From assembly GCA_038496445.1 (NCBI GenBank), contig JALMLS010000204.1, positions 1 to 64,000 of the forward strand: 64,000 nucleotides of DNA, given 5' to 3'. Source of the stretch: Trichosphaerium sp. ATCC 40318 (lineage: Eukaryota > Protista > Tubulinea). How positions within the stretch are numbered: the first letter of the stretch is position 1; each line of letters starts with the position of its first letter. The notes under the pieces are model-generated. The model had not been told where the DNA came from. It was given only the letters and a program-made list of their open reading frames with translations, and ran no database searches. The position numbers were made by a program, and so were the translations under genes. Shown here one piece after another: positions 1 to 17,984 of this stretch.

Positions 1-717
1 GTTCGAAATAAATGCAGTTTTTTATGGTTCGCCACTCACAGTGACGCAAACTTAACAATTATGGTTCGTTCGTTAATAAAATCATCGCTAAAGACCATTC
101 CAAGCTACGTTTGCAGTAAATAAAAAACTGCTTGTTCGAAATTCTTTTCGATCACGTGATACGATAATACGGCGTAAGGTAATCTATTGAGGACATGGTT
201 GTATCAAATCGTTCGAAAAGAATCTTTTTACGTAAAAGCAGTCAATGAAAAGTAACGCAATGCGAAAAACATGAATGATTTCGCTTAAAAACCATCCCTA
301 ATTAGCACGTCAGATAACGGAGTGTACGTACCTTGTACTTTTTTGTACTCGGGGAGTTATTATTCTGAAGAAAGTATACAAAACACGGCAATTCCAAAAA
401 AAACTGCAAACAAATACTACACAAAGTGTCGGATTTCATTTAAAGATGGCACGTGTTTAGGGATAATAAGTAGAAGCATACAAGCACCCGTTTTGTAGCT
501 CTGAGAAATTGAGACTTCTGTCCGAGAATTTCTTTTAACTAGCTTTACTAGCGTTTACTTTTTTGCTGTCTGTGGCGTGCATATAAACATAACAAAGTTC
601 TTACTAAAATGAAGATGAAATCTGACGTCAGATCTCAAGCACTTGCGTTTTTGGGACTCATTCCGATCAATTTCTTCTCAAGACAGTAAATGCTTATTGA
701 CATAGGTCTTGTTTTAT

Positions 718-2414
718 TTAAAGAGCAGGTTCAGCGTTTTTACAAAGAGCTAAAAAGTCGCTAGAGAACCATTGACCAGCTTCAGGTGCAGGTACGACAC
801 TATCTTCAGAGCGACAGTGGAAGTCGTATCTTGTGGATGTGGTATTTGTGGTACCATCAGATTCACCTGTTGAGAAAGAATAGTTAACAAAAAATTGCGT
901 GATGGAATTTAGAGCTTACCAGGAACTTTGACGAAGATGAAAGCGTCAATGTTGCTCACACCAGTAGATTGAGTGCTTGTGGTTGGTCTTACACCTAATC
1001 CTGATCCCTTGATGTTACACCAGTTTGAGCAGTCTTGGCGAGTGTCTGGGTCACCGTTTCTTGATGTATCAATGACAAATGTCTTTCCTGTGATACCAGC
1101 TTGTTCTAGCGCTCCAGAGAGAAGGCTTGTGTAAATGACTTCATTGATGGCATTGTTGTATTGTGATTTTAGTTTACAAGGGTCAGCGGTACTGCTCATG
1201 GATCCAAGAGGTTGGTAGTTGGCGACCTTAATAAAAGATTAGAAAAAAAGCAGACAAAGTATCAACATACGTTTGTAGCGAAACCGCGGATCTTGTCGTT
1301 ACCACCAGCAAGAGCCAAGACTTTAGAGAATACAGCAGATGCTTTTTGGAGGTTGTCTGGCCATCCGAGCCAACCACCGTGAGCGGCATCAACGTATAAG
1401 TGTACGTTGCTTAGGGTAGACAATTGTTGGATAGCGTAAGCAACACCCTAATACATGTTAACGTTTATACGCCGGAATATTTTTTCCTTACTTGTGTGTA
1501 AGCGGTTTCAGCTTCTTGACACTTTTGAATAGCCAAGTTGGTAGCGAGATTAGGCAACGAATCAGGTTCTGTTTTTTTTCGAAAAAAAGTAAGTGGATTA
1601 TTCTTTCATTGAGATTTCATGAGAAGTGTTACGTACCAACAATACCAACGATTGTTTGGTTAGGAAATCTCTTGAATGTAGCAACAATAGGATCAATGTA
1701 CTTTGTTTTGTATGTATTCAAACCTGGTAACAGTTAGCAAAAAAGAAATTTCCGCCAACATGTTTTATTTAGGATAAAAGTTCTTTCGAACGCGCTTGTA
1801 CGTACCGTCAGCGCATGCAGCGTTTGCACATAATATCTCTCCGTTGGAGGCAGCAGCGGCGCAATCGCGGTTAGGTAAATCGTAGATTACGAACATCGTC
1901 AATTCACCAGCAGCTTTTGCATTTTCGAGGACTTTCAAAGCGCCTGGAATTTTCGACATTGAGTCCATCTAAAAAAAAAAAGCGCGTTACGGTTTGGTGA
2001 CACGTGATTTTTTCTGTTCGTAAACTTTTCGTTTGAAAAAGTTGGCAAACTTACCCAATACGCTACTGGGATGTCTCTGGCTTTCTCCAATAGAGATTTT
2101 TCTGAAGGATAATCTTTAATGGAAGAATCAACCTCCGCTTGGTAGTCTGGGTTTACAAAGAATGTCTCGCCCTCAAAAGGGTTTCCAGCTATCTTAGGCT
2201 AAGTTAAAGAGTAAGTTACTGGCCTTTTTAATAAGTTGTAGGAAAGTACTGACGGTTGGGACACGGGAAGTGAGTAAAAAAAGTTACGCCCCGTGGTATT
2301 CACTTTTTAAAGCGTGTGTAGCTCGTTGAGAGTGTTCAGTACCTGATTTACTAATACTTCTGCTGAAAATGCAAAAAGCGCAGCAACGGCGCATAGTAAT
2401 ACGAATGTTCTCAT
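718..2414 (-). CDS. Secreted glycoside hydrolase family 6 (cellobiohydrolase/endoglucanase), about 8 exons
   Basis: Spliced reading gives a signal peptide (MRTFVLLCAVAALFAFSA), then GNPFEGETFFVNPDY, VIYDLPNRDCAAAASNGE, EPDSLPNL, YVDAAHGGWLGW, RGFATNVANY, FVIDTSRNG, WCNIKGSGLG, VKVPGESDG and APEAGQWF, all GH6 hallmarks. GT-AG introns checked. Confidence 0.93.
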
Positions 2415-3265
2415 GTGCGGCCTTTGTTGTGGGATACTTTTGAAAAAATGGACAAAAACGTGAAAAAAAAATGTGATAGGAAAAGTTTTACTGCTGAAAA
2501 CGCGGGCCAACTCACTTTATAAAAAAAATAATATTGGTCACAGGAATACTAGCGCAGCGTACAATTTCTTACTACAACCAATAGGTACTGAGTCAATGTG
2601 TGCATCAAAAAACAGTCACTCAAAACTTTCGCACAGGTAAGTCGACCAACCTACTCCGTGAGCTGTTCTTATCTCTTCCATTGAGTATATTCACACAACA
2701 TAGACAGCTAAAATACCAGAGATAGTTATTTCAGCAAGCTACACGCTGCGTGTGACTTTTTAAGGTCCTAGTCGCACTAGCAAATATGTGCGCCCTTACT
2801 TTTAGGTAAAGCTGTAATGCCCTTCTATTTTATCAATTTTATATGCTAACGATACTTTCTATTCTGTTAACAGTAATTTGATACGGAATAGCCACAGACA
2901 GTGAACGTTATTTGTCTACTTTCAAACATAGCATCTATAGTAATAAGTGCGCTCTTGAGCATAATTGATAAAAGCACGTGGCGTCTTTACGCTTTTGCGA
3001 TGAGACGGATTTATTGTTTTTTTAAAATTGATTGATTGTCAGGATTTGCTAGCGCTGCACTAGCGTCCACCAACGCCAATACTAGCTCACATGGCACATC
3101 ACAGATATCAACTACAAACAATAAATGTGCGGTTTGGTTGATTAAAATCGCGAGGGTGGACAGGCTTCACAATTTTAAGCTTAACAAAGCCTACTGTAGC
3201 GTAAAGCACATTTGATTGTGAAGGAAATCTTAATACAATAGGTTAAGGAAGTTTATTCAGAGTAG

Positions 3266-5215: not shown

Positions 5216-6684
5216 TTAATTCATTGTAATAGTGCTTGTGTATGTATTACTATCGAACTGTACAGTAGCTTTGGTCCATTTACGAACAAATACACCACTG
5301 TTAGTTGATGTCTCATGACAAACCTCTGTTGGTGTTCCATAGTCAACCTTGAGTTCATCTGGAAACAAGTATGGTTTGCCTTTAGCTCCTGGAGGATCTG
5401 AACCTGAAGAACAACCGCTCCAACCATATCCAATCCATGCATAAGGTCCTCTAACAAGTAGGAAACCCGCCAAGTCTTCTTTGAACTGAGGAAGAGGAGA
5501 TACAGCTCTATCTGTTGTTGTGTACTAAAACAAAACTCAGTGTTCATATTTGGTATACTGTTCTAACCGTGTAGTACAGAGCATTGGTATATGCTTCAGA
5601 GGTATTGCTACATTCAGCTCTGAATGTAAGGGCGCATTTTTCTTTCGTAGGTGTTGAAAAATCAGTGAATTGTTGCGAACTCCATCCTCCTTTTCCGGCA
5701 ATAGCAGCATGCACTTTGGCAATATTTGCTTTCCAACTAGTATAAATGGCTGTGGTGTCAGTTTGCGTGAGCCCCATATCTGCGGTGCAATAGTAGTCTT
5801 CTTCAGTGGCGCCACCTACGAAAGACTTAGATTGGCCATATTTGATTATAAAATACAAACCGTATTTGTAGTGATCGCAGAATCCTTGGTTCGGCTCCCA
5901 TTTTTTTCGTGCGTTAGGGAAATCAGTCCACCCATCATCAAGGTAAAACCCAGATATTTGATCGTTACCGAGGCCTAGTACGTTTAGACAAACACAAACA
6001 CTTTAATAGAAAACCTGTTTCACCAAGAATCACGTGATCGATCAAATAATCCGTCAAAGTCGTATTTCGATGATCCCAAAGGTATTCACCACATGGAACA
6101 CCTCCACAGTCGCATAGACTATTACAAGAACCATCTCCGTGAGGATGATGAGGTGTTTGACCTTGATCGTGATAAAACTCTGAACAAAGAGGCGGGTTGT
6201 AGGTTTTATCACATTGTGGTACGTGATAGTTGTTTTTTCCAGAGAACTTTAAAAACCACCCTGCGTAAGCAGCGTCTGTTATTTTCGTGCGAACATTCGT
6301 ATACCAAGGAAGCGCTGTCACGTGGGTTTAGTAAAGGAAGAAAAAAACAAAATGAAAAGTCGGTTTACCTTTGACAAGGTTTCTGTACACGAAAACTTTT
6401 GTTTTCGGATTCACAGCCTTTACACGTTTCACTTGTTCCACCAGTAGCTCTTCGCAGTTCATTGGTTTTGCGTTAGCCCATAACTGCTTCGCATTACTCC
6501 AATCGAAATCAGCAATACCAAACTGAGCTGCAAAGTTAGCATCAAAGAAGCCGGAGTAGTCATTACAAGGCATAAATATCGTTGACATTTGCATGTCATA
6601 CGTTGGCGTCCAATTTGGCGTTGTACCGCAATAGCCGAACTCCAACAAGGTGATGAACAGTACCAGATATATGTTGCGTATCAT
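5216..6684 (-). CDS. Secreted putative glycoside hydrolase (GHL15/GH168-like)
   Basis: Signal peptide; VKRVKAVNPKTKVFVYRN; YLWDHRN; GFYLDD; C-terminal AGFLLVRGPYAWIGYGW...DYGTPTEVCHET..GVFVRKWTKATV. This resembles the hypothetical glycosyl hydrolase family 15 architecture (recognised from memory, not searched). Confidence 0.55.
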
Positions 6685-8607: not shown

Positions 8608-8623
8608 AAGAATAAGAGAATTA
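8608..8623. repeat. Left target-site duplication of the LINE (AAGAATAAGAGAATTA)
   Basis: Identical 16-mer at 16775-16790. Confidence 0.95.
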
Positions 8624-8729: not shown

Positions 8730-11700
8730 TTATTTACCTCTATCAATTGGAAAAATTTCAGTAATTGGTATATTACCGTATCTGATATTCCAGCGTATGT
8801 AATCTGTGCTTACGTATTGTTTAAGGTGTTTCTTTATTTTTATTGTTCTATTGCACCTTACGCGGTATTTTTCGTATAGTAATCTCGTATATAATGTGTT
8901 GAGTTTATTCGCTAATTTTGTGGCAGATGCAGGTTCGATTTCGAAGTTTGTTTCTAGTTCTTTTACAAATTTTTTAGTTACGTATCCTTGTGCTCCACGG
9001 TATAGGTTCGGGTCGTTAGCTTCTTCTTCAGTAGTGAATATCCATTTCACTTTGAATGGTTTTGGGTTATTAATTTCTTTTTTTCCTATTATCGCTAGTT
9101 CTAATCTTTCGTTTGACGGTTCCTCCTTTCGGAACCATTTACATTTACAGAAGGAGTTCTTTGGGTTCACAATATTGTTGTATTTCTTTTTATTGCTTAC
9201 TTTATCCTCTACGTTGTTTTTTAGGTGTTCTTGCGTTATTCGGTTTGCGTGATGTTGCAGTCTTTCAAAGAAGTATGTTGAGTGACATAAGACAAAGTGC
9301 GTAAAGTTTTCTTCTTTTTCTAATTTCTTACGGGATTGGCATATAGAACAAAAAGGATTAGGGTACATTTTCATGTATCTCGCTTGAGTGATTGGGAATT
9401 TTATATGTTTACCTTTTTTATGCATGAAATTATTTAATGGAAGGCCGTTGCTTCTTACTTTTAACAGCCATGACGATATCGTTCTGTCAATATGTAGTTT
9501 ATTTTCTGTAACGCTGGCTTTGAAATTGATATTTTTTCTCGTTCTACAGTGTTTGTTAGAGTTCTCTTCGAGTTTGTCGAAAAAATATTCTGTAAAGCTA
9601 TTTGTTACATGTTCTCTCAATCCTGATTCAAGTATGGATCCATTGAACGTTATATTCCAGTTTGGTAGACCTTTTGGGATTCCTATAACTTTATTGTTAC
9701 TTCTTTCTTTATCCGCTAGTTTGTCTGCTTTAAAATTCATTAGTAAGAGTTTTTGCGTGATGATGGTACCGTGTTTACTTTCCAGTTGTTTGATTCGTTT
9801 AACGATATTAGGTTTATTAGCTTTTATTTTATCTTCTAGGGTGTGACTAGGCACCCATAAGAATCTAATTGGTTCCGATCTTTTATTAATTTCTCTGTGG
9901 ATTCTGTTAATGGTATGGTAATGCGGTTTGTTTATCTTTTTCTTTTTTGGCCAGTTATTCCAGTTGATGATAGATTCTATTGCTGATGTACAGTCTGAGG
10001 CAATCATTATTTTGGTGTCTAATGGAGATATTTTTAGTACTACTTCTATTGCTTCTAATTCCGCGTTAATTGACGTTTTGTTAAATAAAACTGGGAGGCT
10101 AATGTTGATATTATTTGGGGCATATATGCCTATACCTGCTTCGCCTTTATTTGATAGAGAGCCATCTGTAGCTATTGTGATATATTCATTGATGATGAGA
10201 GCGTTATTGTTGAATTCGGTTTTATCTCTTCTTGTCATTTTTCTTTCTATCTTTGATAATTCGTAATTGTGTTGTAATCTTAGGCCTGTTTTTTTTAGTA
10301 ATTCTGAGGCAATCGTTACCGAGTCTGAGTTTATATCAATATCTAATTCTTCATTTGTATTACATGAGGTACAGTACGTGGGTGAAGAGAAACATCTTCT
10401 TTCCGTGATTTTCCGTAGTGCTATATTGTCTGAATTTAGGCATTTTGAGATTAGGTTATTAACGTAACCCACTGTCTGATTTACGAAGAGGGATTTTAGG
10501 TTAGCGCCTGTAAGGGGTATTAGGAATCTTGCATTGAGAAGGTTATGACGTAGTTTGGCTGAGCCTTTAATTATACCTATTGCGTTGTTGTCCATTTCGT
10601 TAAGTGCTTCATTTCCCAAAAAGATCGAGGTGCTTACAAAATCTACAGCTGGATTAATTACTGTATTGATTAGTTTAACTTTGTTGTGTACCGATAGTTT
10701 ATTAGACCAAAGCGTCTTAAGTCTTTTTCTGTGAGTAGCAACTGTTTTATTTATCTGTTTTGTAAAGTCAAGGTTTGCATTCGTTAAAATACCTAGGTCT
10801 TTGTAATTTGTTTTTTCGTCTATGACCGGTATGATTTTGTCTTTCCAGATTAATGATGGTATGTTTTTCAAGTTTACGTACTTGTTGTATGTTAGGGCTG
10901 ATTTGGAGCAGTTTATTTCCATTCCGAAAAAAGAGCACCATTTTTTTAGTATTTTGAACATTTTTTCCATGTCTTGTTTAGATTTGGCCATAATTTTCAG
11001 GTCATCCGCATATGCTAGCACTGCAATTATGATATCTGACCACATATACCCCAGGTTAGATTGTTCTAATTCTTTAAGTAAGACGTTAATGAAAAGGGAG
11101 AAAAGGATAGGGCTTATTACGTCACCTTGTCTAACGCCTTTGTTTATGGGAAATTTCTTTGATCCTACTGGGATATTTAACTCTGTACTCACATCTTTCA
11201 GTAGGGACATAATTATGTCGCACCATTCTTTGGATAGTCCTTGTATTTTCAGTGCTGCCAGAAGGGCCCAGAATTGTACCGAATCGTAAGCCTTCTTGAA
11301 ATCTATGTAAAGGATAAATAAAGGTTTTTTTTTTAAATTTGCGTCTTCTAGTATTTGGTGATACATTTTGTGAGCCATGTGGATCGATCTATTGTTATAG
11401 AACCCAAATTGGAAATCTGATATTACCTTGTTCCTCCTTAGGATACTTGTTAGTCTCTTCGTTATAAGTGTGCTGTAGATTTTGTACATCGAGTTTAAGA
11501 GGCATATTGGGCGGTATTGTGAGACGTCATCCTTTTTCTGTTTGTTTTTTTCAAGAAGGATCATCGTTGATTCTTTCCATTGCCCTGGTATTTTCTTTGT
11601 TTTGAGGCATATGTTGCATAAGTTCTTTATTATTTTTATATTGTCGTATGAAAGTTCTTTATATATTTCGGCTCCTAGGCCAGTCGTACCTGGTGCTTTG

Positions 11701-14700
11701 AAAGACTTCATCTGTTTTATAATTGTGGTTATTTCTAGCGTATTTATACTACATATTTCCTGATTGTATATCGTGTTGAAACTAGCTTTAAAGTTAGGAG
11801 GTCTTGAGAGTGTAGGTATTGGACATTTTTTACTTTGGTCTTTGTATGGGTGATCGAAGTTGCTTTCAAATAGTTTAGACCAAAAGCTATAAAACTCATT
11901 GAAGATGGATTCGTCATCGTTCATTATTATTGGAATACCGTCGATTGAGCTTATAACACTTTCTGTGAAAGAGTTAGTTCCTTTTTTGTCGTTGAATTGT
12001 TTTAAATATTTGTATTTCTTGTATACCGTACGGTTCGATAGTTCTGAAAGTTCATCTATTGATCTGTCTACGCAGATTTTCTTCATGTTGTTTGTGAGGG
12101 CTTTGATCCAATGATTTAGTAAATTCGTGTTCTTTTTTAATATGATTTTTTGTACCGAGTTTTTTTCTTCAATTCTTGGGATCCTTAGGAGTTTGTTTTC
12201 TTCAGCTTTGTCCATCCATTTATTTACTTTGTTTATATTTCTATTGATAGGTCTATTAGGTTCCTCATTAGTTATTTGGTTATTGATCTTTCTACACATA
12301 TTTTTTAGGCTTTTTAATCTTTTATGTTCTGAGTGTTCCACGTACGGTTTTCTGTTGTGATTGTTGTTTCTGATTCCTACTTCTCTAGCTGTGTATTTAA
12401 ATAATTCTTTTGTAAAATTCGTTACTGCTCTGTCGACATAAATGTCACTTAGGTACTCGTCTTCTCCTGCATTTTTAATTAAATTCATAGTGTAGTCAGA
12501 GGGAGAGAAGAGAGGGATTTTGAGCTTTAGCTTTGGACTTCTCGTGTTTAGTTTCTTCTTTGTTTTTCTTGTCTTGGGTGTGTTCTTTACTTTGCTACAT
12601 GGGATGAAACGTGTTGTCAATATAATTGGTTTATGATCTGATGCGCACTCGTCTAATATTGTAATTAGTGATGATGTTTTTTTGGGATTTGTGGTTAACG
12701 CGAAGTCGATTCTTTCATGGAGTGTACCTTTACCATATTTCTTTATTTTTGTATTTAGTTTGAAGGTAAGACTCTTAGTACAGTTCTTTAAGTGATCTAT
12801 TGGGTCTGTAAGGCCGTTATGTAACTTAAATGTATTGAGAATGTTTTCGTACTTTGTTTTGATTTCTATGAATTTTTCGTTGAACCAAAATTGTTTATCT
12901 TTGTCGTATTGGGCCATATTCCAGTCCCCTATGAGTATTACGTTATTGATATCCTTATTTTTGTTTGTCATTTTTTTTGTGAACTTACTGATGATTTCGA
13001 GTTGTTCGATTTTGTTGTGGATTTTATAAGCGCATAGATACACATTGTATATTAGCGTTAGTTTGTTGTCTTTGTTTTTGATGGTGATGGCTTGGAAGAA
13101 ATTATTTGGATGACTAATTATTTTTGTAACTTTCATTAGCTCCTTGTGAACGAGGATTGCGAGGCCGCCTTTTGCTCTTGCCGATTTCGTTGTTAGTTTG
13201 TTTTTTAGGTCTATTTTTTCTGCATCAGACCAAGACATGTTATCTATGAGATCAGAGTTAGTCTTCATGTACGTGTTATTTATTTCATTTCTATTTGGGA
13301 CGTTTGCGAAGAATTTGAAGTTTATGAAGTGTTTTTTGAGTACTTTGTTGAAGGCGTCGCTCTTTATTTGTTCCGTGGATCTATGTATTTCTTGAAGGCA
13401 TATGATATCTAGGTTATTATTTTCGATTAGTGCTTTCACATTGCTTGATTTAGTTTCTATCCTACCTTTAATGTTCCATGAGGCAATGTTTATCTTGTTT
13501 TTGTATGATTTCGTAGTTTTTTGTTTGCCTCCTCCTCTTAGACGCCTTATAATTGTTATTTTGTTATTGATAAGCGTACTTACGCGTGACGATGTAGTAA
13601 CGTACTTGAAACAGGAGAGAAAGAAAAAGTCGTCAATCTTGGCATCAGAGTTAGGTTTCATTATGTTATTTAGGAGCGTACTTATCTTTATATCATAGTG
13701 ACATGTGTAGAGGGTGGAAAAGAAGCCGTTGATTTGGATGGTCTTTGGTTTTCTAAATTTGAGGACTTGACAAATATTGTGAACTATACGTGGTATGATT
13801 AATCGATTAATACAAATGTTAGAGGAAAAACCATGTTTATTAGGTATCTTAACATGTACGAAAAGGGGCTTTCGGTTGAACTCTAAAAATAATTTGGGTC
13901 TTAATGCTGTCGTAGCGCGTCGTGCATCGTATCTAGAATCTTTTATCGCCAAAACGAAGAAGTCTTTGTTTCTTGTTAATCTTGAGAGAGAACATTCCTT
14001 TGAACTGTCTTTCAACAGTCTTCTTAGCAGATACACTACCGAAACTGACAATATAATGCGATGTCTTGTTACCTTTTGCTGTGCAATCATAGCAAATACT
14101 GCGGGCGTATACCTAATATCCTTAGAAGCTATGTAAGTTGTTTTTGTTACCTTAATTTCAGCGAGTGCAATTAAAATATCTTTAGGAGTGCCCATCCATG
14201 TCTTACCAAGATACAAGGAGAGATTCTTGTCAAATTTCATTCTACAAGGAATAAAGCGACCGAACCCATTATCTTCTGCTAGAGCAAGGTGATATCCAGC
14301 GTTCTTGAGGACTGTAACTACTGAGCTCTTGTTTTGGTTTGGAGCTAAGATAATATCGGCGATAAATGACGTCCTTGATATTCCGTGGTTCGAATACGTT
14401 TGAGAGTCTACTATTACCGCTGGTTTTGGAGCATTGGGTTTCCATTTGGTCAAGATGTCGTTAACATTGAAGGGCTCGGTGTTACTCCATAGTGGAGCTA
14501 AGATAATATCGGCGATAAATGACGTCCTTGATATTCCGTGGTTCGAATACGTTTGAGAGTCTACTATTACCGCTGGTTTTGGAGCATTGGGTTTCCATTT
14601 GGTCAAGATGTCGTTAACATTGAAGGGCTCGGTGTTACTCCATAGCGTCAGTATACGGCAGTTCATGAAATCTTCCATATAGCGAAGGAAATCAATCAAC

Positions 14701-16703
14701 GTTTTGGTTCTGTCGATATCGAAGAAGGTATGAGCACTGGCAGGAATCAAGTTCTTTCTCAGCGTATCTTTGAAGAATTTGACTTCTTCTAAGTACGCTT
14801 CAGGAACAGTACCAATTTTCAAACCAAAAACGAATGCGCAATGACCATGTGGAAGGGGAACTGATGCGTAACCAACATATCCTATAGCATGATGAGTATT
14901 TGTTAACATTAAATAAAACTGTTTTTTTAGATTTTTTGTATTTTCGTAATTACTGCAATTGTTTACATTGTATTTTACAGTGCGAGAGGTATTGATATTT
15001 TTGAAGGTGTTGAAACGGGCATAGTTTAGTTCGTATTTTTTGAAAACAAGGGAGGATTTAGTTTTTAGTTTAGAGAAAATGTTCGTTTTAGATTTGTTTA
15101 ATACTACATTTTCAGAAAAGGAAAGAGAGTGAAGAGATAATGTCTTCTTTTGTTTAAAAGAGGAGAAAATATAAAAGCGAATCTTAAAAATAGGGTTTAC
15201 GTTACCTTTAGTTAGCCAGTTTCTGAATTTAGTAGGTAACTCTATCATCTTATTAACATCGATATCGGGAGATATTGGACCGCCTGGGTAGAAAACACCG
15301 AAAGCCGCTGAGAAGTGGATGAGCTGTGTCCATTCCACCAAGCGACCATAGCGCGTCGAAAGATCAACCTTATCTGGGTCATGTTGTTCGTTTGCAAAGA
15401 TACCATCCTCGTCCTGAAGAGAGATTAGGATTTTTTGGAGTTTGAGAAAAAGAAAAGAAGGTGATACAATACTTACTTCCTCGTCCTTGTTGGATGCATT
15501 AACAAAAGAGAGGAGAAGGTTTATATTCTCTTGTTCTTCTCTCTTTGTAATGGAATCCAGGACTTGTTTTTCGAGGGTTGCTTTGAAGGGACTATCTTGG
15601 AGTGATCCTAGTCTTACCATAGCTTCTTCACGGGTCATATTGGCGAAACCATTGAGACGATTGTTGTTGTTATTTGCAGACATGTTGTGTATGTGTTGAT
15701 GAGGCGACAAAAAGGATAAGGACTGAAAATAAATTATTTTATTAATTTTATTATATGTCCGTCGGGAGTTTATGGGGGAGTGTGGTTTTCCATCACTTGT
15801 GTTATATTTGTTTCTGTTGTATCTTTTTTTGAGATTTGGCTTTGCCGTAAAATGTTTACTTCTACTTCTTTTATTCTTGATTTCTGAACATTCGTTGGAG
15901 TAATTTGTGTTGTTATTTGGGGTGTTGTTTAGGGACATTATGAGTTCTGGTAAGATTTGAAAAGCTATTATGCGAAAATATAAAGAGACGAGAGGGAGAA
16001 TTTTAAAGTTTACTGTACTTACCTTTTTGTAATGTACGTTGTTACGCGTTTTGCAATTGTGTGGGATTTTTGTATTTTCTGTAAGAAGGAGGAGCAAGAT
16101 AAATGTAATACTTGGTAACGTTACGGTTGCCAGGATTAAAGGTTTGGGTAGATTTGTTTTTATTACGTTTTTTACAACATTTTTTACTAATCTTGAGGGG
16201 AAAGGGGTATATGTGAGGTTGTGGTAACTAAGCGTTTTGTGTTTTGTGTGTTTTCTGTAGATGAATTCCGTGTTTATCTTAATTTGTCTATTCTCTTGAT
16301 GGTAATGAGGTTGATTTATACGTACTGGCACGGTGTCTGTTACTAGTCTTTTGTGGTTTGGGTTGTATCTTTCGAAAGATTTTGTGTTTGGGTTGCATAT
16401 GTCTATCGACGATAGGTACAAACCTAACACTAGAATTCTCATTATGATTATTGATATTTTCTTAAGGTTAATTCTCGATTTTTGGGGAGAAGCTCGAACT
16501 CGCTTCTTCGCTACACCGCGGCACCTTATGGTATAAGCCTTGGCCGGTGTAATTGCACGATATTCCCTCGATTTTTTTTTGTTTTTTGTTTTTTGTTTTT
16601 GTTTACGGGGAACTTGTTCCCCGACCAGCACGTTAGCCGACGGTTGCAAAACTTTTTGGCCATCGACCAACGTACCGGTTCCTTTTGACGTTGTCGATGG
16701 CAT
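8730..16703 (-). CDS. LINE polyprotein: leader + ORF1-like region + ubiquitin-like domain + AP endonuclease + reverse transcriptase + RNase H + C-terminal Zn finger
   Basis: APE motifs IASWNIKG, DIICLQE, YNVY, LIGDWN, RIDF, SDHKPI (about 13490-12620). RT motifs KAPG, YRPICLLN, QFGF, IDFKKAYDSV, GVRQGDVISP, YADD (11012-11001), YKDLG. RNase H motifs ATDGS, AELEAI, SDC, WVPSH, ADKLA. CSIC...HFVLC near the C-terminus. Confidence 0.95.
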   Translation of the reverse strand: MPSTTSKGTGTLVDGQKVLQPSANVLVGEQVPRKQKQKTKNKKKSREYRAITPAKAYTIRCRGVAKKRVRASPQKSRINLKKISIIIMRILVLGLYLSSIDICNPNTKSFERYNPNHKRLVTDTVPVRINQPHYHQENRQIKINTEFIYRKHTKHKTLSYHNLTYTPFPSRLVKNVVKNVIKTNLPKPLILATVTLPSITFILLLLLTENTKIPHNCKTRNNVHYKKVSTVNFKILPLVSLYFRIIAFQILPELIMSLNNTPNNNTNYSNECSEIKNKRSRSKHFTAKPNLKKRYNRNKYNTSDGKPHSPINSRRTYNKINKIIYFQSLSFLSPHQHIHNMSANNNNNRLNGFANMTREEAMVRLGSLQDSPFKATLEKQVLDSITKREEQENINLLLSFVNASNKDEEVSIVSPSFLFLKLQKILISLQDEDGIFANEQHDPDKVDLSTRYGRLVEWTQLIHFSAAFGVFYPGGPISPDIDVNKMIELPTKFRNWLTKGNVNPIFKIRFYIFSSFKQKKTLSLHSLSFSENVVLNKSKTNIFSKLKTKSSLVFKKYELNYARFNTFKNINTSRTVKYNVNNCSNYENTKNLKKQFYLMLTNTHHAIGYVGYASVPLPHGHCAFVFGLKIGTVPEAYLEEVKFFKDTLRKNLIPASAHTFFDIDRTKTLIDFLRYMEDFMNCRILTLWSNTEPFNVNDILTKWKPNAPKPAVIVDSQTYSNHGISRTSFIADIILAPLWSNTEPFNVNDILTKWKPNAPKPAVIVDSQTYSNHGISRTSFIADIILAPNQNKSSVVTVLKNAGYHLALAEDNGFGRFIPCRMKFDKNLSLYLGKTWMGTPKDILIALAEIKVTKTTYIASKDIRYTPAVFAMIAQQKVTRHRIILSVSVVYLLRRLLKDSSKECSLSRLTRNKDFFVLAIKDSRYDARRATTALRPKLFLEFNRKPLFVHVKIPNKHGFSSNICINRLIIPRIVHNICQVLKFRKPKTIQINGFFSTLYTCHYDIKISTLLNNIMKPNSDAKIDDFFFLSCFKYVTTSSRVSTLINNKITIIRRLRGGGKQKTTKSYKNKINIASWNIKGRIETKSSNVKALIENNNLDIICLQEIHRSTEQIKSDAFNKVLKKHFINFKFFANVPNRNEINNTYMKTNSDLIDNMSWSDAEKIDLKNKLTTKSARAKGGLAILVHKELMKVTKIISHPNNFFQAITIKNKDNKLTLIYNVYLCAYKIHNKIEQLEIISKFTKKMTNKNKDINNVILIGDWNMAQYDKDKQFWFNEKFIEIKTKYENILNTFKLHNGLTDPIDHLKNCTKSLTFKLNTKIKKYGKGTLHERIDFALTTNPKKTSSLITILDECASDHKPIILTTRFIPCSKVKNTPKTRKTKKKLNTRSPKLKLKIPLFSPSDYTMNLIKNAGEDEYLSDIYVDRAVTNFTKELFKYTAREVGIRNNNHNRKPYVEHSEHKRLKSLKNMCRKINNQITNEEPNRPINRNINKVNKWMDKAEENKLLRIPRIEEKNSVQKIILKKNTNLLNHWIKALTNNMKKICVDRSIDELSELSNRTVYKKYKYLKQFNDKKGTNSFTESVISSIDGIPIIMNDDESIFNEFYSFWSKLFESNFDHPYKDQSKKCPIPTLSRPPNFKASFNTIYNQEICSINTLEITTIIKQMKSFKAPGTTGLGAEIYKELSYDNIKIIKNLCNICLKTKKIPGQWKESTMILLEKNKQKKDDVSQYRPICLLNSMYKIYSTLITKRLTSILRRNKVISDFQFGFYNNRSIHMAHKMYHQILEDANLKKKPLFILYIDFKKAYDSVQFWALLAALKIQGLSKEWCDIIMSLLKDVSTELNIPVGSKKFPINKGVRQGDVISPILFSLFINVLLKELEQSNLGYMWSDIIIAVLAYADDLKIMAKSKQDMEKMFKILKKWCSFFGMEINCSKSALTYNKYVNLKNIPSLIWKDKIIPVIDEKTNYKDLGILTNANLDFTKQINKTVATHRKRLKTLWSNKLSVHNKVKLINTVINPAVDFVSTSIFLGNEALNEMDNNAIGIIKGSAKLRHNLLNARFLIPLTGANLKSLFVNQTVGYVNNLISKCLNSDNIALRKITERRCFSSPTYCTSCNTNEELDIDINSDSVTIASELLKKTGLRLQHNYELSKIERKMTRRDKTEFNNNALIINEYITIATDGSLSNKGEAGIGIYAPNNINISLPVLFNKTSINAELEAIEVVLKISPLDTKIMIASDCTSAIESIINWNNWPKKKKINKPHYHTINRIHREINKRSEPIRFLWVPSHTLEDKIKANKPNIVKRIKQLESKHGTIITQKLLLMNFKADKLADKERSNNKVIGIPKGLPNWNITFNGSILESGLREHVTNSFTEYFFDKLEENSNKHCRTRKNINFKASVTENKLHIDRTISSWLLKVRSNGLPLNNFMHKKGKHIKFPITQARYMKMYPNPFCSICQSRKKLEKEENFTHFVLCHSTYFFERLQHHANRITQEHLKNNVEDKVSNKKKYNNIVNPKNSFCKCKWFRKEEPSNERLELAIIGKKEINNPKPFKVKWIFTTEEEANDPNLYRGAQGYVTKKFVKELETNFEIEPASATKLANKLNTLYTRLLYEKYRVRCNRTIKIKKHLKQYVSTDYIRWNIRYGNIPITEIFPIDRGK
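13933..15683 (-). CDS. Predicted spliced ORF1 protein (about 441 aa; exons 15683-15477, 15413-15206, 14881-14151, 14112-13933) ending in an RRM-like domain
   Basis: Three GT-AG introns matching host intron style. The last exon is in a different frame from the long ORF and reads VYARSICYDCTAKGNKTSHYIVSFGSVSAKKTVERQFKGMFSLKINKKQRLLRFGDKRF*. The start codon is a best guess. Confidence 0.6.
14340..14645. repeat. Perfect 153-bp tandem duplication (2 copies, 51 aa each) inside the LINE
   Basis: 14340-14492 equals 14493-14645; the protein shows LWSNTEPFNV...FIADIILAP twice. Confidence 0.95.
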
Positions 16704-16723
16704 AGATCTTGTTTTATTTAATT

Positions 16724-16774
16724 AGCGTCGTTGCCCAGGGTGAACTGCGTGGAAGTCGCTGGTGTTGTCACCCC
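16724..16774 (-). ncRNA. Minimal HDV-like self-cleaving ribozyme at the LINE 5' end
   Basis: GGGGUGA-CAACACC-AGCG-ACU-UCCACGC-AGU-UCACCCU-GG-GCAA-CGA-CGCU: 7-bp P1 with G1-U wobble, P2 AGCG/CGCU, P3 ACU/AGU, L3 UCCACGC, P1.1 CC/GG. G1 abuts the TSD. Confidence 0.8.
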
Positions 16775-16790
16775 AAGAATAAGAGAATTA
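16775..16790. repeat. Right target-site duplication of the LINE
   Basis: AAGAATAAGAGAATTA, identical to 8608-8623. Confidence 0.95.
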
Positions 16791-16833
16791 TAACAAAACT
16801 CGCTTATCACCCACAACACTTAAAGTAGCAATT

Positions 16834-17984
16834 ATGTTGCGCTTCACTAGGCCGCTCTATCAAAGTCTCAGCTTAGAGAGTGCATTAAGGAGGAGCAGAA
16901 GAAGACGCAAACCCACTAAGAAGGTCGAAGTTGATACAAAAGAACACATTGATTTAACAAGAGGTTTATACATTCGCATAAAATAGCGCTTTTATAACGT
17001 ATTTAGGTCCTCCGCAGCATTTTGCAGTTGTGAAGTCACCAAAAGAGTGGAAACAAGGTCTAACGCATAAACAATTCCACGTTACAAGAGAACACGGTAC
17101 TGAGCGTGCTTTTCATAACGAATATCACGATGAGAAGGCTAGCGTACGTAAAAGTCACTTCAAACGCGTAATAGACGTATTGTAGTACCCTTCGGACAAA
17201 AATACATCCGTAATAAATGTTTGTAGGGTATTTACTACTCAAGATGTGGTGGACAGCCTCTATTCAGTTCTGATCACAAATATGACAGTGGGACAGTGCG
17301 TACCTTTGACATTTTAATCAAACAACTAAACTCTACACAACAGGGATGGCCATCATTTTGGCGTCCTATAAAAGAAGAAGCTGTTTATTACAAGACAGAT
17401 AGTTCTTTTGGTTTTTCAAGGACAGAGGTAATGGATTTTTTTTTATAAATATTTGACAGATGACTTTCTTCTTCTAATACTCCGTTCAGGTACTTTGCTA
17501 TAAATCAGGCGCTCACTTAGGTTTGTGAAACACCCCTTTTACTATTTTAGTTAATGATGTTTCAGGACACGTGTTCTCAGATGGTCCAAAACCGACGGAA
17601 CTTCGGTATGCAAAAATTAGGGTTTCTTGGTGTTTTTCTGATTGTTGTACTGTCTAGTTATTGCATGAACTCTGCTTCTCTTGATTTCAAAGAGGGGATA
17701 TCTTCGCTTACGCCACCAGTTGAAGAAAAAGCGGATATAGAAAACGAAGAAGAAGACGGTATGGATGAAGCAGAACAAGAAGAAACCGACGATACAGAAT
17801 TTAACGAAGAAAGTGTTGAATCAACGGATACACCAGTTACAAACCAGACTGAGGATACACCACAACAGACTATAGATCCCAAAGATTCACCTTCAGATGC
17901 GGGTGTTGAACCAGAGATTGCACAAGGCACGTGTACTGGTACTAGAGGAGAGTACTAATAGTTTTGTTTATAGACAAAAAGTAA
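16834..17984 (+). CDS. msrB: Peptide methionine sulfoxide reductase B with N-terminal targeting-like leader and acidic C-terminal tail
   Basis: Spliced motifs [54 protein letters not shown]. Confidence 0.92.

Follow-up and report, generated by a model that had tools for sequence, protein, structure and literature searches.

Candidate frame-switching splicing of ORF1 in a LINE retrotransposon of the protist Trichosphaerium sp. ATCC 40318

How could a retrotransposon that is copied from RNA keep introns inside one of its genes, and where does that gene end? The question is raised by a long interspersed nuclear element (LINE) on the minus strand of contig JALMLS010000204.1 of Trichosphaerium sp. 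ATCC 40318 (Tubulinea; GenBank assembly GCA_038496445.1); the window analysed here is the whole stretch of 64,000 nt from position 1 of that contig. LINEs are taken to be intronless, as copying from RNA erases introns, Penelope-like elements being the cited exception (PMC8557442). In the Trichosphaerium element, ORF1, the first open reading frame, appears, from the pattern of its sequence, to be a four-exon gene nested in a much longer open frame. A sequence-only reading of this DNA had proposed that a 38-nt intron near the end of the gene shifts the reading frame and thereby completes ORF1 with an RNA recognition motif (RRM) and a stop codon. The proposed layout is indirectly supported by the exon-like G content of the last exon, by two upstream introns and by a parallel layout in a distant LINE, and frame-switching splicing of ORF1 in the manner of Copia elements, with a last exon of 59 codons, is the probable arrangement; the proposal is less secure where it names the splice sites, as a stronger donor at 14206 offers a rival intron of 86 nt.

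A putative four-exon ORF1 within one long frame

Two RNA runs were compared with 5,801 nt of the window, and both represent spliced RNA of this organism (two GT..AG joints occur in a neighbouring host transcript). Protein-likeness was measured block by block as an amino-acid log-ratio, together with G content or the frequency of G at the first codon position. The element and its predicted parts are as follows:

16774-8624, minus strand: full-length LINE of 8,151 nt, delimited by flanking 16-bp direct repeats and by an RNA-run contig that leaves the sequence exactly at 16774
16703 (ATG) to 8730, minus strand: single stop-free frame of 2,657 codons, spanning the runway, exons 1-3, all three introns, exon 4 (out of frame), the spacer and ORF2
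15684-16703, minus strand: 5' "runway" of 340 open codons before the ORF1 start; G 0.13, log-ratio -0.23 (not protein-like)
15477-15683, minus strand: putative ORF1 exon 1, with an inferred ATG at 15683; first-codon-position G 0.30, log-ratio +0.08
15414-15476, minus strand: putative intron A, 63 nt (3n), stop-free, GTAAGT..CTAAT..CAG; score 17.2 (inside the host range), interior G 0.02
15206-15413, minus strand: putative ORF1 exon 2; first-codon-position G 0.34, log-ratio +0.10
14882-15205, minus strand: putative intron B, 324 nt (3n), stop-free; G 0.07, log-ratio -0.37
14151-14881, minus strand: putative ORF1 exon 3, recognised by composition; carries an RRM-like pattern read by eye and would supply the opening strand and helix of the final RRM-like domain
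14340-14645, minus strand: exact tandem duplication inside exon 3, 153 nt = 51 codons, in frame
14113-14150, minus strand: putative intron C, proposed as the frame switch; 38 nt (3n+2)
13933-14112, minus strand: putative ORF1 exon 4, 59 codons and stop read in the second frame, overlapped by the long frame; G 0.21
13530-13932, minus strand: spacer, read in the long frame only; log-ratio -0.18; AATAAA at 13841; its last residues, immediately ahead of ORF2, are RRLRGG
8730-13529, minus strand: ORF2, with apurinic/apyrimidinic (AP) endonuclease, reverse transcriptase (RT), RNase H and a C-terminal Cys/His knuckle (Pfam PF03372, PF00078, PF00075)

The element belongs to the non-LTR retrotransposons (those that lack long terminal repeats, LTRs) of the AP endonuclease (APE) type, in other words to the LINEs: an AP endonuclease is followed by a non-LTR RT, the element is flanked by a target-site duplication (TSD), LTRs are absent (terminal repeats were looked for in the LINE and none were found), and the 3' tail is simple. 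Pfam placed AP endonuclease, RT and RNase H within the last 1,600 residues of the 2,657-codon frame (PF03372 with E 2.7e-9 and PF00078 with E 2.9e-37 in the scan of the long-frame protein); the catalytic motifs of ORF2, read by eye, are intact, and the closest PDB matches to the element's protein are the R2 and L1 ORF2 proteins. The LINE at 16774-8624 is best explained as a young and intact copy.

The long frame is held open on purpose through the runway, intron B and the spacer, which are not protein-like. Together these blocks contribute approximately 580 codons that lack a stop in the long frame; the probability of a stop-free run by chance is 3.6e-10 for the runway, 3.6e-4 for intron B and 2e-4 for the spacer, and 5e-5 over 14150-13743, the 136 codons that begin with intron C. 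All three blocks are G-poor, and three protein-like blocks sit between them. Introns A and B begin with GT and end with AG, contain branch-like motifs, are multiples of three in length, and are distinct by their G content and amino-acid make-up; intron B combines a good acceptor (rank 13 of the 461 AGs in the element) with a weak donor (rank 125 of 285 GTs). By exon arithmetic, the predicted ORF1 protein (ORF1p) would be 441 amino acids long, or 390 without the 153-nt duplication of this copy. That duplication (14645-14340) repeats 51 residues of an RRM-like block, and may be real in this copy or an assembly artefact. The single-sequence structure model of exon 3 was poor, at a predicted local distance difference test (pLDDT) of 38. 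A search with the stretch from exon 3 to the endonuclease found nothing; an Atlas search for ORF1 homologues returned nothing usable, a scan of JGI metagenomes for them returned one LINE only, unrelated and broken, and a single repeat-rich match of exon 3 among 1.84 billion representatives was taken as spurious.

The 38-nt intron, the second frame and their alternatives

At the proposed switch, the quoted 38-nt GT..AG interval is indeed present at minus-strand positions 14150-14113, in phase 0 of the long frame; it reads GTAACA..CTAAG..TTAG, with the branch motif 13 nt from its end, inside the 13-23 nt expected of a CTRAY-like branch motif in a host intron. The host was represented by 18 introns from the window, 16 of them read off gene frames and 2 seen as RNA-contig joints. 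The 40-nt host intron at 6014-5975, which the sequence-only reading had offered as a precedent for the size, does exist, and its branch geometry matches that of intron C, with CTAA beginning 13 nt before the end of the intron in both. A CTAAG branch-like site also occurs in the host intron at 5860-5816. Downstream of intron C, the frame from 14112 is open for 59 codons to a TAG at 13935-13933, with the translation that had been given for it, and 14112-13933 is indeed open in two frames, since it also lies within the 2,657-codon frame. The G content of exon 4 is like that of exons 1-3 (p 0.76) and unlike that of the introns, runway and spacer (p 0.001); a changepoint in G falls near 13905, approximately 30 nt beyond the exon 4 stop (permutation p 0.03).

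The relatives recovered by RT search are all distant (26-39% identity), and the RT tree consists of metagenome relatives only, the nearest at 37%. One of these LINEs, L007 (JGI 3300045996; 48% GC, from another organism; RT 33% identical to that of the present element), has a 1,011-codon open frame at 90-3125 whose stop overlaps the ORF2 start; as this stop falls within the first three codons of ORF2, the arrangement has the geometry of termination-reinitiation (PMC5972666). The predicted introns of L007 measure 201, 66 and 67 nt (3n, 3n and 3n+1), have GT..AG ends and are each G-poor, and the predicted last exon (2641-3003) is in a second frame; that frame is protein-like (+0.12), whereas the long frame over the exon is not (-0.38). 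Folded alone, the off-frame last exon of L007 gave the order beta-alpha-beta-beta-alpha-beta (E6-12 H18-27 E36-38 E57-63 H66-78 E90-93; pLDDT 56); nearly all of its top 50 Foldseek and VIA matches were RRMs (prob 0.97-0.99, best E 0.01), the best VIA match having Z 6.5 and a root-mean-square deviation of 3.7 over 84 residues, with L1 ORF1p at Z 5.8. This model provides evidence of moderate strength that the exon folds as an RRM. L007 thus appears to follow the same design as the Trichosphaerium element, with two 3n introns, a frame-shifting last intron, an off-frame last exon and a filler frame that leads to ORF2; the hand-over to ORF2 differs, being an in-frame fusion with RRLRGG before the endonuclease in the Trichosphaerium element and a stop-start overlap in L007. 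By analogy with L007, the long frame over exon 4 is likely to be filler. The earlier description of this region as dual-coding goes too far: both frames are open, but the long frame of L007 over its last exon looks like stop-free filler and not like a second folded protein.

L005, the sister of this element in the RT tree (100/97), and L010 have a runway, an ORF1 with RRM-like blocks read by eye, no evident introns, and a stop that overlaps the ATG of ORF2; the ORF1 of both appears to end in an RRM-like domain. In the Trichosphaerium element, the RRM at the end of ORF1 is a candidate, drawn from a pattern read by eye.

Several observations weigh against frame-switching splicing at this locus. 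At 38 nt, intron C falls short of each of the 18 host introns (40-92 nt); it scores 12.1, towards the low end for host introns (9.3-24.1), and within the element its donor ranks 66th of 285 GTs, its acceptor 112th of 461 AGs and the pair 124th of 1,109 GT..AG combinations; taken alone, the evidence for intron C is modest, and the weak donors of introns B and C fit regulated retention, and chance as well. Over exon 4, the two frames are not separated by composition (-0.08 vs. -0.10), and an open frame of 59 codons is common: the chance of 60 stop-free codons at the composition of the element is ~0.012 in one test, and nine off-frame open stretches of at least 55 codons occur in the element, so that the length of the second frame was rejected as evidence. 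Exon-by-exon searches for an RRM at the end of this ORF1 found no match in Pfam, PDB sequences or Atlas; these blanks carry little weight because neither Pfam nor the PDB sequence search detected the RRM of L007, which is supported by a fold model. When exons 3 and 4 were compared pairwise with L005 and L007, no significant similarity emerged. A profile built from seven RRM-like pieces of relatives favoured the second frame (28 of 1,000 shuffles vs. 453) and a profile from three pieces favoured the long frame (18 vs. 79); as the two disagree, the profile test was set aside. The structure of L007 is a single-sequence model with the pLDDT, Z and E values given above, and its introns were predicted from sequence. 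In the RT tree, L007 falls outside the group of this element; as the intron positions could not be aligned either, shared ancestry and convergence are both possible. Finally, no RNA contig in the two small runs lay over 16306-11450, so that none of introns A-C was covered; that no abundant ORF1 message was seen in them is slight evidence against high expression there.

The splice signals also admit a switch that is real and uses other sites, the 59-codon frame then being incidental. Donor 14206, which is stronger than 14150, would pair with acceptor 14121 to give an 86-nt intron and an ORF1 stop one codon later at 14113, and donor 14150 with acceptor 14099 would give a 52-nt intron and a stop at 14087; both pairs score above the 38-nt intron (18.4 and 14.1, respectively, vs. 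12.1), both lengths are inside the host range, and the near-immediate stop would be as in EVD and BARE1 (PMC5580714). These sites leave the exon-like G of 14112-13933 unexplained, however, and would truncate an RRM-like domain at the point where the ORF1 of relatives closes with one. The additional 5' portion of the 86-nt intron is rich in G (0.20 vs. 0.13 in host introns, p 0.10), and in the 52-nt form 27 nt separate the CTAAG from the acceptor, more than in most host introns. Such a displaced switch is unlikely, and the use of exactly 14150 and 14113 is a finely balanced call that could go either way.

It is also improbable that intron C does not exist and that ORF1 and ORF2 are fused in one frame, giving a polyprotein that is cut, for example, at RLRGG, with the second frame a product of chance or a relic of an older ORF1 end. 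Single-ORF LINEs exist, and two of the relatives, L001 and L002, each have a single ORF in which a 2A-like motif precedes the endonuclease; the weak splice signals, the nine similar off-frame stretches and the failure of the searches to detect an RRM are compatible with such a fusion. It does not explain, however, how introns A and B survived retrotransposition, why G changes near 13905, or why L007 has a three-intron layout; moreover, the long-frame peptide after 14150 looks like filler, as the log-ratio of the spacer indicates. A programmed -1 ribosomal frameshift just after 14113 that finishes ORF1 is very unlikely: the second frame does lie at -1 and runs open from 14112, but no canonical -1 slippery heptamer (X XXY YYZ) was found in 14400-13933, there is no unusual fold at the junction (z +1.1) and no stable fold over 14215-14100, a majority product would need near-complete shifting, and the last intron of L007, at 3n+1, would shift the frame in the opposite direction. 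An assembly artefact or a chance reading, to which a host gene with a probable 1-nt indel near 5955 and the exact 153-nt duplication in ORF1 might point, can practically be discounted in view of the 2,657-codon open frame, the intact catalytic motifs, the 16-bp TSD, the RNA contigs that match the 5' end without differences, and the independent DNA of L007.

Element ends, other relatives and host neighbours

Three further features mark the ends of the element:

16775-16790, minus strand: 5' copy of the TSD, 16 bp
16675-16776, minus strand: candidate hepatitis delta virus (HDV)-like ribozyme at the first base of the LINE (Rfam RF00094; E 1.8, 26.2 bits where the gathering score is 50)
8608-8623, minus strand: 3' copy of the TSD, after a short (CTAA)n tail without poly(A)

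At 16774, the first base of the LINE, the RNA-run contig diverges into another flank; other copies of the LINE therefore exist, and the 5' end is correct. RNA contigs cover only 16307-16774 of the element, with no joints and no differences from the sequence. In the ribozyme candidate, P1 and P3 fold and P2 is not resolved, and the score is below the RF00094 threshold. At the 3' end (8640-8624, minus strand), an AATAAA is followed by the short CTAA repeats. Within the runway, the donors at 16675, 16022 and 16423 are strong and pair with good acceptors at 3n distances of 351, 300 and 99 nt, respectively, and further 5' introns are possible in these areas (16022-15723 and 16675/16423-16325, minus strand); RNA contigs run unspliced through 16675, 16423 and 16325. 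The AATAAA at 13841 in the spacer is expected by chance in A-rich DNA. The RRLRGG immediately before ORF2 (13560-13530, minus strand) resembles the C-terminus of ubiquitin; a ubiquitin-like reading of the spacer end was rejected, with no ubiquitin match in Pfam or PDB sequences, and no link between LRLRGG and retrotransposons was found in the literature.

Among the relatives, L005 (3191-6318), the closest of them, has a runway, an ORF1 with three internal stops (TAG, TAG, TAA) and a frameshift in its endonuclease region, which may reflect a damaged copy or long-read errors. L001 (91-1190) and L002 (88-1130) have a runway of 320-350 codons that ends in 2A-like GIEPNPGP just before the endonuclease, and no recognisable ORF1. 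The same ATGACCAGTAA string stands where the upstream frame ends in two distant LINEs, L006 (230-250) and L007 (3112-3125). L007 also has a perfect 13-bp hairpin near its 5' end (140-190; fold z -4.9), and its ORF2 protein carries chromodomains. Eighty eukaryotic-type LINE fragments (L014-L093) were found in genome bins labelled bacteria or archaea, most likely as bin contamination; an open-frame map of 80 LINE loci from bacterial genome bins showed the three-intron layout in none of those with enough upstream DNA.

Upstream of the LINE, a host transcript that is expressed and has two introns supported by RNA (16964-17006 and 17144-17226) occupies 16830-17250 on the plus strand; it starts approximately 55 nt outside the 5' end of the LINE and runs in the direction leading away from the element. 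At 6686-5220 (minus strand), a host gene seems to lose its frame by one base near 5960-5945, after the 40-nt intron, which could be an assembly indel or the mark of a pseudogene.

Proposed expression cycle and known systems

If frame-switching splicing operates here, the spliced RNA would lose introns A and B in frame, and removal of the 38-nt intron C would shift the frame; ORF1p would gain the second half of its last RRM-like domain and stop at 13933, and ORF2 would then be out of reach. The unspliced RNA would start at 16774, and ribosomes would read it in one frame from 16703 through the introns, pass exon 4 in the filler frame and continue into ORF2. An internal promoter and a poly(A) site near the AATAAA at 13841 may serve the ORF1 message, the ORF2 protein (ORF2p) may be released at RLRGG, and the ribozyme may cleave at the 5' end. 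Cis-preference of LINE ORF2p is established for mammalian L1; if it is assumed here, ORF2p would copy the RNA that made it, only intron-retaining RNA would be mobilised, and new copies would therefore keep introns A and B. As a full-length, TSD-flanked copy still has introns A and B, spliced RNA must be barred from being copied, and intron C would do that. For a group of protist LINEs as a whole, a scheme of two RNAs (one spliced to encode ORF1p, the other left unspliced, perhaps freed by the ribozyme, with a frame that is open only to reach ORF2), with introns inherited through cis-preference, stands about an equal chance of being right or wrong; under that scheme, the hand-over to ORF2 would come in variants, namely the fusion ending in RLRGG here and the stop-start overlap in L007.

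Of the known systems, the Ty1/Copia elements are those that the proposed switch resembles in the way it would work, although the present element is not one of them. In EVADE of Arabidopsis, BARE1 of barley and copia of Drosophila, removal of an intron shifts the frame and creates a stop, yielding a Gag-only RNA, while the full-length RNA keeps the intron (PMC5580714); these elements and the present one share a single long ORF when unspliced, and a frame shift with a new stop if spliced, which is predicted here from the DNA. Ty1/Copia elements have LTRs, Gag, integrase and protease, however, none of which was found in this APE-type LINE; and whereas the Copia reading stops at once, the frame shift in the Trichosphaerium element would add 59 codons that complete a domain, in an arrangement that also has two in-frame introns and a runway of 340 codons kept free of stops. 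Penelope-like elements keep spliceosomal introns after retrotransposition, mostly in the 5' untranslated region, and the meaning of this retention is described as unknown (PMC8557442); they have a GIY-YIG endonuclease and a telomerase-like RT, unlike this element with its AP endonuclease and RNase H and its putative introns inside ORF1.

Translation is coupled in the bicistronic LINEs SART1, with an overlapping stop-start, and mammalian L1 (PMC5972666). The stop that overlaps the ATG of ORF2 in L005, L010 and L007 is of this kind, ORF2 being reached by ribosomes from the upstream frame; SART1 and L1 make both proteins from a single unspliced RNA and lack introns in ORF1, whereas in the Trichosphaerium element the unspliced reading continues in frame into ORF2, and a spliced RNA of its own would encode ORF1p. 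LINE ORF1p usually carries one or two RNA-binding RRM domains (PMC3905857); the RRM-like C-terminal pattern is shared with this type, but in the Trichosphaerium element no CCHC knuckle was seen, and the candidate domain is split by the putative intron and completed in a second frame. L1Tc/ingi and R2 are reported to have 5' HDV-like ribozymes, and L1Tc a 2A peptide (PMC3185411, PMC3708506). The present element is like them in a candidate ribozyme-like fold at the first base, one long frame and a possible release signal before the endonuclease, and differs in a ribozyme match below threshold and in RLRGG instead of 2A. A LINE with ORF1 introns, or with the splicing switch proposed here, was not found in the literature searched, the coverage of which was incomplete and did not include Repbase. 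L1Tc/ingi and R2 elements are not known to have ORF1 introns.

Elements of this design would be misread by annotation based on open reading frames only, which would report one giant protein and miss the true end of ORF1. If splicing is confirmed, the Trichosphaerium element would be a LINE that retains introns for a testable reason, namely that only its unspliced RNA makes the copying enzyme; and if the frame switch is true, LINEs would have reached the solution of Copia elements to the need for far more structural protein than polymerase.

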